Below are positions 42,260 to 63,771 of a stretch of 64,000 nucleotides of DNA, piece after piece. Numbering within the stretch: the stretch's first letter is position 1; each line of letters starts with the position of its first letter. The translations under genes and the position numbers were made by a program. The notes below the pieces were generated by a model, which saw nothing but the letters and a program-made list of their open reading frames with translations, was not told the origin of the DNA and searched no databases. The DNA comes from Ministeria vibrans ATCC 50519 (lineage: Eukaryota; Protista; Filasterea): the NCBI GenBank assembly GCA_943704425.1, contig CALSCP010001127.1, positions 5,585 to 69,584 on the forward strand, given 5' to 3'.

Positions 42260-42308
42260 CTGCCGCGTTTAGAATAGAAAAGCAAGTTTAGAATAAGGAG
42301 GACAGAAA

Positions 42309-42522
42309 GAGAGAGTTTGAGAGTTTGAGAGTTTGAGAGTTTGAGAGTTTGAGAGTTTGAGAGAGAGAGTTTGAGAGTTTGAGAGAGAGAGTTTGAGAGT
42401 TTGAGAGTTTGAGAGTTTGAGAGTTTGAGAGTTTGAGAGAGAGAGTTTGAGAGAGAGAGTTTGAGAGAGAGAGTTTGAGAGAGAGAGAGAGAGAGTTTGA
42501 GAGTTTGAGAGAGAGAGTTTGA
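42309..42522. repeat. (GAGAGTTT)n/(GA)n satellite abutting an assembly gap
   Basis: Seen directly. Confidence 0.95.
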
Positions 42523-43208
42523 NNNNNNNNNNNNNNNNNNNNNNNNNNNNNNNNNNNNNNNNNNNNNNNNNNNNNNNNNNNNNNNNNNNNNNNNNNNNNN
42601 NNNNNNNNNNNNNNNNNNNNNNNNNNNNNNNNNNNNNNNNNNNNNNNNNNNNNNNNNNNNNNNNNNNNNNNNNNNNNNNNNNNNNNNNNNNNNNNNNNNN
42701 NNNNNNNNNNNNNNNNNNNNNNNNNNNNNNNNNNNNNNNNNNNNNNNNNNNNNNNNNNNNNNNNNNNNNNNNNNNNNNNNNNNNNNNNNNNNNNNNNNNN
42801 NNNNNNNNNNNNNNNNNNNNNNNNNNNNNNNNNNNNNNNNNNNNNNNNNNNNNNNNNNNNNNNNNNNNNNNNNNNNNNNNNNNNNNNNNNNNNNNNNNNN
42901 NNNNNNNNNNNNNNNNNNNNNNNNNNNNNNNNNNNNNNNNNNNNNNNNNNNNNNNNNNNNNNNNNNNNNNNNNNNNNNNNNNNNNNNNNNNNNNNNNNNN
43001 NNNNNNNNNNNNNNNNNNNNNNNNNNNNNNNNNNNNNNNNNNNNNNNNNNNNNNNNNNNNNNNNNNNNNNNNNNNNNNNNNNNNNNNNNNNNNNNNNNNN
43101 NNNNNNNNNNNNNNNNNNNNNNNNNNNNNNNNNNNNNNNNNNNNNNNNNNNNNNNNNNNNNNNNNNNNNNNNNNNNNNNNNNNNNNNNNNNNNNNNTCTT
43201 TGTTTGAA

Positions 43209-58075: not shown

Positions 58076-58935
58076 ATGTCTGACCCTGATAAGGTGGTGG
58101 ATCGGGCGAATGCTGATCGCGAGTGCTGGATTATCAAAGTAAGGGACATTGTGCGCTTGTGTGGTCTGCGCCACGCTCACAGATGCTCCAAAGGTCCCCG
58201 AGTATGTGGCCAAGGTGTGGAATGAGGCAGATGACATGAGTAACGTGGGCGTTCTCCGAACTTACGCGTAAGACAAACGAGAAAAGGAAAAACATTCGAT
58301 GTGAAACGTTTCTTCCTCTCCTCAGAAACCCAACCAATGCAAAGCAGACCAAGGTGAGTTGAGGGCAGGCACTGCAGCGACGTACTATTGTATTGCTTTG
58401 CAGGAGATACTGTATGTGAAGAACTTGGAGGAAGGCCTCAACGGGCTGGGAGTGGAGCAGCGGCCGTCGCGCGCCCCTCCGTCCACGCTCATTGTGTCCG
58501 CCGAGACTGACGGCTGTACGTTCCTCTGTGTGTCGTTCTGTCAGCCGTGCACCGTGCCTTGCTCCTACTCACTTGCCCTCTCCTCGTCCGCCGTAGCGAG
58601 ATTGCGTCTGGAAGGACAGCAGAAGCGCCGACTGGATCTTCAGCCGCAGCGCAACGAACGCTACCGCCAATATATCCAGTATGCATTTTGATGGGTGCCG
58701 TTGCTTCTTTGCGAATGGGTCCTTTTACTTCTGTGTAGGGAACGACGAGCAACCGTAGAGCAAAAGAAAGAAGTGGTTATGATCGACGAGACGGCCAACA
58801 AATCCTTTCGCCCGACCATTGGTCAGACTGTTGAAGAGGTACGCACACGGGGAAAGAGAACAAAGTGGTTAAAGAGACGAGGGGAAAGGAGCAAAGTTAT
58901 AGAGAGTGAGTGTGTGCATGATGACGTGTATGAAT

Positions 58936-58997
<62 letters not shown>

Positions 58998-59362
58998 ATC
59001 TAATGTATATGTAATGTGATGTATGCTGTGGTAGGGTCGCGAGGAGAAACGACGTCGCGTCGAGTCGCGTCGGGATCGAATTCCCGCCGAAGAGCTGCGC
59101 GGAAAACTGTTTGGGTAAGTCTTATCATTGTTGTTATGGTTGGTGTTGTTGTTCGTGCGCGCGTGTCGACTGTCTGACTCGATGTTTCGCACTGTGTAGG
59201 CTCTTCTCTAAGCATGAGTACTACAGTTTCAATGACTTGGCGTCACTGACTGAGCAGCCGCGCGAGTACCTCAAGACCATTACTTCAGTCCTGTGTCAGC
59301 CGGGCACTGGTGTGAACCGCGCGAAACTCATGCTTCGTCCCGAATTCCGCATTTCACACTGA
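58076..59362 (+). CDS. GTF2F2: TFIIF beta subunit (RAP30)
   Basis: CWIIK|VPEYVAKVW at the N-terminus and a winged-helix C-terminus LFSKHEYYSFNDL..LTEQPREYLK...LRPEF. Confidence 0.88.
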
Positions 59363-59570: not shown

Positions 59571-61131
59571 ATGCTTCGCTTAACGACCCTCCAATCGTCG
59601 CCCGAAAGATGGAAGCGGCAAATGGGTGTGCGTATGATGAGCAATGGGTCGATTCGCGACAAATTTGCCGCACTGATCGCTAAAGGCAAACAATACATTG
59701 CGGGCGCGAAAGAAGTCGTCAACAACGGCAAGCTCGCCATTCCCATCCAGCAGCGAATGTCGCGTGGAGAGGTGGTGCCTCTTGCGGATGCTCAAATGGT
59801 CTACGAGAACCGTCGTGATCTCCGAAAACTCATCCCCTTTGCGCTGCTCGCCGTCCTCCTGCCCGAAGCGATTCCGGCCGTCGTCTATGCCCTGCCGCGA
59901 TCGCTCCCTTCCACCTTTGAGTCTGCGGAGGAGCGCGACGAACGCTACTCCAAGCTGATCGACAAGCGCACTCTGCTTGTCAACGAGAGCGCAGACCTCC
60001 GCAAACGCTTTCAAACGACATCAGACGCGAACGCAACGCTTGCCAGCGCAACGCACGCCGAACGAGAACACGCTGAGCGCATTCTTGACTCGCTCCTGGC
60101 CGTACCCTCCTTTCTGCCTGCGTTCTGGCGCAAGCATTCTCGAGGGAACCGTCTGCTAGAACTCAAGATGCACGATGAGGTACGCACGGGTTAACAGAGA
60201 CACGCACAGCCTGGTCATTCATTCTCTTCATTGCAGCTCCTTCGAAAACACATTGTGGACCATGACACAGCAACGCGCGACATGCTCATGCACCTTTGCT
60301 ACCAGCGCGCGCTTCCATCCGTTGACACCGTCCGAGACACCTCATTCTACTTGAGTGAGCTTCGTTCAGTACGACAACATTGCAAAAACCCGTACTACTC
60401 TCTAACTCTGTACGCTTCAGTGGTTGACGAACACACAAGGCGTGCAGGACGCTGCAGGTTTGCAAGGACCTCTCTTGGCCAATGTATTCCGAGTGCGCCA
60501 CCTTCAAAATAACAGCGAAAAGAACGAGCCGCTGATGCAGAGAATGGCACCGTCGCATGCCATGCAAAACGAAGAAGAGAAATCCAACGTACCGCACGTC
60601 GGCCAACTCGACATGCGCGTGGGCATCGTTCAGAATGTCAAGCGGCACCCGGATGCGGATCGGCTTTACGTTGAACAGGTGCCTGGCCAAGGAGCACGAG
60701 ATGCAATTTTCCTCTCAACGCCCACTATGTAGGTTGACGTTGGTGAAGCGACACCCCGCACCATTGTAAGCGGCCTGGTGCAGTGGATGAGCGCAGACGA
60801 GCTGGAGAGGCGCAAAGTAGTTGTCCTGTGCAACCTGCCCGTGTCGTCGATGCGTGGTGTCCCATCGCAGGGGATGCTTTTGTGCGCCGTCTCGCCCACT
60901 GCAGTCGAGCCTATTGCCGTGCCTGACTTTGCCAAGCCGGGCGACCCCGTTGTCTCACCTCTATGGCTTTCCGAACCTCAATCTCCGACAAAAAAGATGC
61001 GGAAGATCTGGCGCGCAGTCGCACCCAGTCTGCGAACAAATAGCGACGGCGTGGTCGAGTACAAGGGCACCCCTCTGCTTGTTCACGACACACCCTGCCA
61101 GTCGTCCCTCTGCGACTCTCCCATTCAGTAG
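59571..61131 (+). CDS. LETM1/LETMD1-family protein fused in frame to an EMAP-II/Arc1p-like tRNA-binding OB domain
   Basis: LETM1 part: RRDLRKLIPF...LP..LPSTFES, CYQRAL, ELRSWL. tRNA-binding part: LDMRVG...HPDADRLYVEQVDVGE..PRTIVSGL...CNL...MRGVPSQGMLLCA. Phase-0 introns 60180-60236, 60369-60420 and 60679-60732, with no stop between the domains. Confidence 0.7.
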
Positions 61132-62244
61132 TTTGGTGAAACACCCCCCGTAAAGTGTACAACTTGATACAATAATTGAGAAGAACTGCAAGAACCAAGA
61201 ATAATTAGAGGGAGATGCGATTGAAAGATACACATTTTCTTCAACAATAATAACCTTGCAAGAAATACGCTAGCAAACTGTCTTGGATTGCTTTTGATCC
61301 TGCGTCCGAACGATAATCATAGCCCTTTCTCAAGATTCAAGACAAAGAAAAGGTGAGCGATTACATTAACGCACATTTAAAATCCCTTTCAAGTTTCATC
61401 TGATTTCAGTTGATACAAAAATATTAGGTTATGTGAGTGAGGCTGGTTGGCGGCTGGCTTATGCCCGCCAAAGTGCTCACGCAGTTGCCGTGTGTGCAAT
61501 GTTCCTGCGCTGACTCGCTCGGCTCAGGCTCGTGACCTTCCCACATGTGAAGCTCAATCACGGCGTCGGTGTGATCGCAGAGGCTTTGCGAGGCTGTGAG
61601 AAGGCTGTGAGCTGTGAGCAGTTTTGCTTCCGCTTTGCTTCGGTGTGCGTCATGCACCAAGCCGCATGTACGCGCACTTGAGCATATATGCGGCGCAGCG
61701 TACCCTACACACTCGACACCGTCGGCTTTGCCAGAAGCACTGGTTCCGACGTCGAGGGTAGTGAGGAGGTTGGCAGGGAGTTGGCAGACTCGTCATAACA
61801 GATCTGTGCCAAATAACCTCAAAGTTGTGAAGGAGAACGATTGCGAGCTGAATAAGCTGATATGTGGTCTGTGTAGAGTGTGGAACCTTCCGATCTGCAG
61901 ACTATAAAGTAGACAGACGTGTATGAGTGAGGGTTATTATCGAAGCTTTCCCTTTTTTTTCACACGGACAACTCTATTTTGGCGAGCTCGCCGTCACATG
62001 CCTGGGGGCAATACTGCGCTGAGTTAAAACTTAAAAGCTCAAATTTTATTAGTTTTTTCTCCAGTTTCATACTGGTCAACCGGCAGATCGGGACTCAGGA
62101 GGGTACTACTACTTATATCTCGCTGTTCACAAGCTTGTTTGATTCGCAACCCTTTTTGTTTGTCTTTTTGTACTTCGTGGTTTTTCTAAGAACAACCATT
62201 AATACGCACCGCAGTCATTTTAGGGTGTGAGATCGCAGATAGTT

Positions 62245-63771
62245 ATGTCCACTGTTCCGGAAAGTGAAACGCCTGTTGTCCCAAAGCCGGCTGAAAAAGT
62301 GAAAGCACCTGGCGTCACTGTCCTCAGCGGTTTTCTGGGCTCAGGCAAAACCACGCTGCTCAAGCGACTACTCGAACACGCTGCGACGAGCGGCACGCGC
62401 CTTGGAGTCATCGTCAACGACATGGCCTCGCTCAACGTTGATGCCGACATTGTGCGCAAGGCGACGCGGGGACAGGGTGTCAAACAGGCCGAGTACAAGC
62501 TAGTGCAACTGGAGAACGGCTGCATCTGCTGCACGCTACGTGAGGACTTGCTCATCGAGATCAAGCGTCTCGTCGCCGAACAACAGCTGGACTACATTGT
62601 GATTGAAAGCACAGGTGTCAGCGAGCCGTTGCCCGTCGCCGAGACATTCACGTTTGCTCCCCTTGACGATGAGGCGGAACACTCGCACGACATCACGGCG
62701 GACCATGCGATCGAGGTGCTCGGCGATGTTGCTCGCCTCGACTGCATGGTGACCATGGTCGATGTTGTGTCGTTTGCGGCGAACCTGTTCTCGGTCGAGA
62801 CGTTGGCCGAGCGATACGGCCGCGACGAGGTGGAGGAGGAGGACAATCGCACGCTGGCGTCGCTGCTTATCGACCAGCTTGAGTTTGCAAACGTCATTGT
62901 GCTCAACAAGGTGTCATCGTTCCCCAGCAGTGGATTTGACGGCGGCAACGTCAAAGGGAAGCCATTGACGATGGATATGGTGCGAGGCATCGTGCAGCGC
63001 ATCAATCCGGACGCACGCCTGCTCGAAACGGACTACTCAGCGATCGACGCGGCCGAGGTGCTAAACACGGGCCTGTTCGACTTTGAGCAGGCGATGCTTT
63101 CGCCCGGCTGGCTCAAGGAGGCGCGTGGTGAGCACATGCCGGAGACGGAGGAGTACGGAATATCGTCTTTCGTGTGGCGCAGCCGTCGTCCACTTCACCC
63201 GCAACGCACAAACAACCTGCTTGGACCGGGCAGTGCAGCGCTCCGACAGACGGGTCTGGTGCGTGCAAAAGGGGTGACCTGGTTTGCGAACGCCCACGAC
63301 GTGTCCTTTTACGTGCAAGGAAGTGGGGAGATGTGGAACGTTGAGCCGTCGGATCCGTGGGAAGCCACACTACCGCCGGAGGAGCGGTTTTACATTGACC
63401 AGCCGGCGGAGGTGAAACAGCGCTTCATGGACGAGGACTGGCTTGAGCCGTACGGTGACAGGCGTCAAGAGCTGGTCATGATCGGGCAGTTTAGCGATGG
63501 AGATCGCGACACAGTGCGGCGTATGTTTGGCGAGGCATTGGTGACCGACGAAGAGTTTGAAGCGGGTCCTGGGGCGTGGGCCAACTTTGAGGACGCACTC
63601 AACTTTAAAGATATGTTTGCAGGCGACGACGACGACATCGACGACGACGACGACGACAGTAAAGACGACAAAGAGGCGGAAGCAGAAGGAAAGCATGCAA
63701 ATGACACGACTGCCAACGACATGAAAAGTGAACAGCCGTCACTAAAACGCATTCGAAAGGAAACAGTGTAG
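62245..63771 (+). CDS. COG0523/CobW-family G3E GTPase metallochaperone (YciC/ZigA-like); intronless
   Basis: LSGFLGSGKTT, IVND, NGCICCTLREDL, IESTG, NK, EEYGISSFV, DRRQELVMIG. Confidence 0.93.
   Translation: MSTVPESETPVVPKPAEKVKAPGVTVLSGFLGSGKTTLLKRLLEHAATSGTRLGVIVNDMASLNVDADIVRKATRGQGVKQAEYKLVQLENGCICCTLREDLLIEIKRLVAEQQLDYIVIESTGVSEPLPVAETFTFAPLDDEAEHSHDITADHAIEVLGDVARLDCMVTMVDVVSFAANLFSVETLAERYGRDEVEEEDNRTLASLLIDQLEFANVIVLNKVSSFPSSGFDGGNVKGKPLTMDMVRGIVQRINPDARLLETDYSAIDAAEVLNTGLFDFEQAMLSPGWLKEARGEHMPETEEYGISSFVWRSRRPLHPQRTNNLLGPGSAALRQTGLVRAKGVTWFANAHDVSFYVQGSGEMWNVEPSDPWEATLPPEERFYIDQPAEVKQRFMDEDWLEPYGDRRQELVMIGQFSDGDRDTVRRMFGEALVTDEEFEAGPGAWANFEDALNFKDMFAGDDDDIDDDDDDSKDDKEAEAEGKHANDTTANDMKSEQPSLKRIRKETV

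Follow-up and report, generated by a model that had tools for sequence, protein, structure and literature searches.

The window analysed here is a stretch of 64,000 nucleotides from the filasterean Ministeria vibrans ATCC 50519 (assembly GCA_943704425.1, contig CALSCP010001127.1, positions 5,585 to 69,584 of the forward strand), and positions given without a contig refer to it. We found that the region from 59571 to 61131 holds four exons without internal stops, which together form a 465-codon frame closed by a single terminal stop at 61129-61131, as determined by translation and codon counting (Table 1). The exons are separated by three introns, all of the GT..AG type and each located between codons. 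All exon searches were run one exon at a time, and the concatenated exons were used only for counting codons and stops. Our exon translations and splice-site check bear out the three phase-0 introns and the single open frame described in the initial annotation, and the ...ELRS|WL junction that it reported is found as the C-terminal ELRS of exon 2 followed by the N-terminal WL of exon 3.

Table 1. Features of the locus in window coordinates, with amino acid (aa) numbering of the predicted product
Feature	Position	Strand	Description and basis
Exon 1	59571..60179	+	aa 1-203; start codon, presequence-like N-terminus, LETM1-type TM helix and most of the LETM1-like module; ends at the family DD motif (here HDE); translation, Pfam, family HMM
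Presequence-like N-terminus	59571..59660	+	first 30 aa with 6 Arg/Lys, 2 Asp/Glu, 6 Ser/Thr; composition count
Predicted TM helix	59829..59897	+	aa 87-109; top hydropathy window; LPE.IP and P..LPST just after
Intron 1	60180..60236	+	57 nt, GTACGC..CAG, phase 0; codon scores low in all frames
Exon 2	60237..60368	+	aa 204-247; LETM1-like module to the residue preceding the conserved Trp (..L-R-S)
Intron 2	60369..60420	+	52 nt, GTACGA..CAG, phase 0; CTAAC 14 nt 5' of the acceptor
Exon 3, head	60421..60501	+	aa 248-274; W-L and predicted tail of the LETM1-like module
Linker	60502..60606	+	approximately 35 aa with a net charge near -2; three ATGs in frame (60535, 60544, 60562)
Exon 3, end	60607..60678	+	start of the EMAP-II-type OB fold (first strand, L12 loop HPDAD); Pfam, alignment
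Intron 3	60679..60732	+	54 nt, GTGCCT..TAG, phase 0
Exon 4	60733..61131	+	aa 334-465 and stop; remaining OB fold and EMAP-II-specific C-terminal subdomain

Exon 3, which spans 60421-60678 in full, is divided in Table 1 by content. With intron 2 removed, the first stop encountered is at 61129. Since the length of intron 2 is not divisible by three, its retention changes the frame and leads to a stop at 60512; this stop and the in-frame ATG at 60535, both named earlier as possible signs of two separate transcripts, are indeed present in the sequence. The GC content is high throughout the gene (0.51-0.62 over 59700-61100) and falls in the flanking spacers alone (0.30-0.40), and therefore no AT-rich spacer lies inside the gene. 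The frame scan and the GC profile thus agree with the earlier statement that neither a stop nor an AT-rich spacer separates the two halves. A linker is likewise present between them, but its length had been put at about 55 residues; because the first approximately 27 residues of exon 3 appear to belong to the LETM1-like module, the part without family similarity shortens to about 35 residues.

We found that the N-terminal part of the product belongs to the LETM1 family. The Pfam model LETM1_RBD (PF07766) matches exon 1 above its cut-off of 25.3 bits, with a score of 30.4 and E 3.7e-7, over model positions 6-78 of 229 only, and this match above the gathering score backs the proposed LETM1-type transmembrane (TM) and ribosome-binding region. 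A HMMER search with exon 1 against 1.84 billion representative proteins returned 85 LETM1-like relatives, and a family profile of 313 positions was built from the 56 relatives that are 250-460 amino acids long. Exon 1 aligns to positions 48-236 of this 313-position profile, reaching the DD motif. The best relatives are proteins of 320-380 amino acids from chytrids, Zoopagomycota, and ichthyosporeans, with identities of 38% or less; among language-model clusters, 'LETM1 domain-containing protein 1-like' lies closest (0.92). The composition of the first 30 residues suggests that the N-terminus may target the protein to mitochondria. Hydropathy peaks at residues 87-105, and the LPE.IP and P..LPST motifs that follow the predicted helix are invariant columns in the homologue alignments.

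Similar to LETMD1 and the short LETM1-like proteins of opisthokonts, the product combines a presequence-like N-terminus, a single helix, and what appears to be a common motif order (LPE.IP, P..LPST, DD, RG, L..W). With the exons tested separately, the order of the motifs of the module, DD..(E)RG..L-x-x-W-[LI]..LL..SR, is kept across exons 1-3, with DD replaced by DE (in HDE) and RG by RA. These two replacements distinguish the product from its short LETM1-like relatives, as does a 190-residue extension, made up of the linker and the EMAP-II domain, beyond the normal C-terminus of the family. Besides the fused gene, the only LETM1-family match of the assembly is the canonical LETM1 encoded on contig C2457; no unfused LETMD1-like copy was found in the assembly, where the fused gene is the only LETMD1-like gene. 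The yeast protein Mrx10 is probably LETM1-like as well; no supporting paper was found for it and it is not used as evidence here.

Since exon 3 carries both the sequence that follows the LETM1-like region and the start of the OB fold, intron 2 is the critical point for the question of one gene or two. In a fragment alignment with 56 homologues, exon 2 aligns onward from exon 1 and stops one residue short of a conserved Trp. This Trp, part of the motif L-x-x-W-[LI], is the most conserved C-terminal column of the family (45 of 50 homologues have it), and exon 3 opens with codons for W-L, in agreement with the W-[LI] of the motif. The fused frame is thus a direct result of the splice that restores the conserved L-x-x-W-[LI] motif. 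Against an HMM of the family tail, the initial 34 residues of exon 3 gave an in-register match of 4.4 bits; 3 of 1000 shuffles and 2 of 493 windows of real proteins from the window score at least as high (empirical p of approximately 0.003-0.004). These data suggest that the LETM1-like soluble module extends to about residue 274.

Codon usage was scored with a model trained on five stretches of the window that Pfam confirms as coding. Positions 60421-60534 score +0.13 per codon in the spliced frame compared to -0.35 in one alternative frame and -0.59 in the other, which is the frame used if intron 2 is retained, and only 0.8% of out-of-frame windows reach +0.13. Positions 60535-60600 score +0.17 in frame. 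We consider it likely that the locus is a single gene encoding a LETM1-like protein fused to an EMAP-II domain, with the splice-site and frame evidence suggesting that intron 2 is spliced out and that the whole is expressed as one mRNA.

The two halves of the locus are also contiguous in DNA from another source. A metagenome scaffold (ENA ERZ23497388 scaffold_31010) that was assembled independently, from another sample, spans 60093-60783 with 98.8% identity. It differs from the window by eight substitutions and no indels, and it has intact splice sites and an open frame. This confirms contiguity, and the locus is not an assembly chimera. Since the scaffold carries the locus at 98.8% identity, a close strain or haplotype of this organism is present in public environmental or culture data. 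Three of the eight differences between the scaffold and the window are clustered at the scaffold end, and their number is too small for a selection test.

The protein collections were also searched for transcript-derived proteins of this gene. The HMMER search with exon 1 gave none near-identical among the 1.84 billion representatives, the best reaching 38% identity. A word search with exon 3 gave a single near-identical match (P0087), which is a genomic ORF running into intron 3, and a word search with exon 4 gave no match above 53% identity among those covering the full domain; the few matches above 53% each cover less than 40% of the query. A bacterial promoter and terminator scan carries no meaning for a eukaryotic gene.

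The C-terminal half is an EMAP-II-type tRNA-binding domain. The Pfam model tRNA_bind (PF01588) is collinear over two exons, with the end of exon 3 corresponding to model positions 1-22 and exon 4 to positions 23-95, and the exon 4 match reaches 66.1 bits (cut-off 27). Exon 4 also matches human EMAP II/AIMP1 (E 5.5e-28), with exon residues 1-118 corresponding to residues 33-150 of the 166-residue EMAP II chain, and this alignment places the EMAP-II-specific C-terminal subdomain downstream of the OB fold. The full Pfam model together with the match to human EMAP II uphold the claim of a complete tRNA-binding OB domain. Across 46 homologues, 55 columns reach a conservation of 80% or more; the fused domain keeps 42 of these and the AIMP1-like paralogue of the same genome keeps 39.

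A co-crystal of Trbp111 has demonstrated that this class of OB fold captures the 3'-terminal CA of mature tRNAs, with a CA pocket formed by K73, R75, I77, F78, S82, and M85, which correspond to K269, V271, M273, R274, S278, and M281 of Arc1p (PMC11286949). When mapped by motif spacing, the equivalent residues here are P, S, M, R, S, and M. Four of these positions match Arc1p (M273/R274/S278/M281), so that the M-R...S..M core appears to be kept. The equivalent of K73/K269 is Pro here and Gln in the AIMP1-like paralogue, while the R75 position is variable, being V in Arc1p and A in the AIMP1-like paralogue. In Arc1p, a basic region beside the OB fold adds contacts to the tRNA body, and the EMAP II domain loses tRNA binding once cleaved from AIMP1 (PMC11286949). 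The linker upstream of the OB fold is slightly acidic here and lacks an Arc1p-type basic region. Given the pocket residues and the overall conservation, we hypothesize that the fused domain binds tRNA.

The assembly contains two further EMAP-II copies, one in an AIMP1-like gene (contig C2083) and one in TyrRS (contig C1696). In the AIMP1/p43-like gene (C2083:15722-15949, minus strand), a Lys-rich linker connects an N-terminal part resembling a coiled coil to an EMAP-II domain. In the TyrRS gene (C1696:3256-3390, minus strand), a C-terminal EMAP-II-like domain is spread over several short exons, as in human TyrRS. The presence of these two genes and the range of relatives of the LETM1-like half are both consistent with a holozoan. 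The fused domain is 47% identical to the AIMP1-like paralogue, which is about equal to its identity with human EMAP II, and a recent duplication of the AIMP1-like gene as the source of the OB domain is ruled out by this value. Intron 3 of the fused gene (LYVEQ|VDVGE) and the 46-nt intron of the paralogue (LYIEE|IDVGE) lie at the same codon boundary. The common intron position points to an origin of the OB domain from an AIMP1-type gene at the DNA level, and not a recent one.

We found no second instance of this domain pairing. A Pfam scan for tRNA_bind in 84 LETM1-like relatives drawn from the 1.84 billion representatives gave none (0/84), metagenome scans with exon 1 and exon 4 as single proteins gave no relatives, and no mention of a LETM1 and EMAP-II pairing was found in the literature searched. 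A length-restricted word search with the profile gave no protein of the same architecture among 29 relatives; since these are so few and nearly all from Kickxellales, mostly Coemansia, that search is a poor survey. The statement of the initial annotation that the combination is not known from model organisms therefore holds among the relatives, metagenomes, and literature searched. The architecture is a new combination of two well-known modules and is so far known from one organism only.

Comparison with known EMAP-II proteins places the product apart from each of them. It has in common with AIMP1/p43 and Arc1p a complete EMAP-II-type domain (OB fold and C-terminal subdomain), whereas its partner is a LETM1-family membrane protein, and its expected compartment is the mitochondrial matrix in contrast to the cytosolic multisynthetase complex of AIMP1 and Arc1p. 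The N-terminal helical, GST-like, or leucine-zipper scaffold domain found across AIMP1/p43, Arc1p, and Plasmodium tRip is missing here, as is a basic or Lys-rich region before the OB fold. The synthetases TyrRS and MetRS carry the same OB domain as an appended tRNA-capture module, while the partner here is a non-catalytic membrane protein that is ribosome-associated by homology. The closest functional analogue is tRip, a membrane protein that displays a C-terminal EMAP-II-like tRNA-binding domain (PMC9136112). Both combine a membrane anchor with a C-terminal EMAP-II-like domain, but tRip has a GST-like N-terminal domain, resides in the plasma membrane, and serves host tRNA import and synthetase scaffolding, whereas the anchor here is LETM1-like and presumably lies in the mitochondrial inner membrane.

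Mouse LETMD1 spans the mitochondrial inner membrane and lies mostly on the matrix side, and mitoribosomal proteins are among its proximity partners (PMC11467678). From the capture of the CA end by Trbp111, together with the topology of LETMD1 and its proximity to mitoribosomes, we propose a matrix-facing role in holding tRNA. The predicted product would be a LETMD1/LETM1-like protein with an N-terminal presequence, one TM helix, a soluble module, a linker of about 35 residues, and an EMAP-II-type domain. Homology to LETM1 and LETMD1 would place it in the mitochondrial inner membrane, with the entire portion beyond the helix on the matrix side. The OB fold would then keep mature mitochondrial tRNAs, bound by their single-stranded 3' CA end, beside membrane-bound mitoribosomes, and the protein might serve as a local tRNA holder or chaperone. 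Location, topology, and the link to mitoribosomes are predictions from homology. We assign a probability of roughly 0.6 to this proposal as a whole, that is, a single gene for an inner-membrane LETMD1/LETM1-like anchor that holds tRNA in the matrix near mitoribosomes.

We found that the mitochondrial contig of the assembly (C1523, 55.9 kb) has 25 genes for tRNAs, which between them serve all 20 amino acids. Its cox1 reading frame contains 13 TGA codons, with TGA read as Trp. A tRNA-Asp(GTC) lies near both ends of the contig and may reflect circular overlap or a terminal repeat. With tRNAs for every amino acid encoded on this contig, tRNA import is unnecessary and hence an unlikely role, and as the main function of the fused protein it was rejected. 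The membrane-tethered tRNA-binding factor suggested in the initial annotation, as coupling tRNA supply or import to mitochondrial translation, thus stays plausible as a tether through LETM1/LETMD1 homology, while its import component is unneeded.

Three other readings of the locus were weighed against this proposal. The locus might yield two products, namely a LETM1-like protein that ends at 60512 through retention of intron 2 and an EMAP-II-like protein made from an internal promoter and the ATG at 60535, with the fused frame being coincidental or a minor isoform. The in-frame ATGs in the linker would allow for a stand-alone EMAP-II-like protein of about 160-180 amino acids, such proteins of 150-230 amino acids are widespread, and no transcript-derived protein of the fused gene was found in the protein collections searched. 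However, retention of intron 2 would forfeit the Trp motif, the most conserved C-terminal one of the family, in exchange for a frame with a codon score of -0.59 per codon; the gap between the two genes would be just about 20 nt and free of AT-rich sequence, and the head of exon 3 resembles a LETM1-like tail. We consider two separate products unlikely, and an EMAP-II-like product from an internal start could exist alongside the fusion.

If the fusion is real, its OB domain could still be without a tRNA role, either as a protein-interaction or dimer-mimic module or as a recent neutral read-through that followed the loss of a stop. The missing basic flank and the Pro at the K73/K269 position would fit this, as would the loss of tRNA binding by EMAP II freed from AIMP1 (PMC11286949) and the restriction of the fusion to one organism. 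Yet conservation on par with the AIMP1-like protein of the genome (42 versus 39 of 55 columns) and the preservation of four positions of the 3'-end pocket argue against this reading, and an identity of 47% to the paralogue marks an old copy whose frame is still intact. We therefore regard an OB domain without a tRNA role as quite improbable. Still further from our expectation is a mitochondrial tRNA import factor, in which the fused protein would act as a membrane receptor for tRNAs from the cytosol, much like tRip on the surface of Plasmodium. An intact EMAP-II domain would suit such a receptor, but the 25 mitochondrial tRNA genes for all 20 amino acids speak against it, and homology puts the portion beyond the helix on the matrix side and not in the cytosol (PMC11467678); we judge this reading very improbable.

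In a more specific version of our proposal, a LETM1-family anchor associated with mitoribosomes would carry a membrane-tethered receptor that binds tRNA 3' ends on the matrix side. It would then be the first EMAP-II domain in mitochondrial translation, and the gene would be a Rosetta stone fusion that argues for placing short LETMD1-like proteins, as a group, at the interface of tRNA and mitoribosome. We offer this version tentatively and regard it as more doubtful than the general proposal. The LETMD1-like proteins are still little understood, and in mouse they are tied to mitoribosomes and mitochondrial protein synthesis solely by proximity labelling and the phenotypes of knockouts. If true, a natural fusion of this kind, with a domain for which the capture of tRNA 3' ends is the one biochemical activity established, would be independent evolutionary evidence for a part of the LETMD1-like family in mitochondrial translation, and it prompts the question whether LETMD1 homologues lie near tRNAs. 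It would also add a second membrane-anchored EMAP-II domain after Plasmodium tRip, in an organelle that has no need of tRNA import.

Elsewhere in the window, a (GAGAGTTT)n/(GA)n satellite at 42300-42525 runs into a stretch of N from 42524, which is either a scaffold gap or withheld sequence. A long (GT)n microsatellite (58935-58995) lies within an intron of the gene (58077-59362) that is located upstream of the predicted fusion gene, and similar (GT)n/(CA)n runs occur in the TyrRS locus on contig C1696. Downstream of the predicted fusion gene, after a spacer of about 1.1 kb, positions 62224-63768 hold an ORF of 515 codons that is free of introns; its domains, CobW/HypB/UreG and CobW_C, are those of a COG0523-type GTPase.
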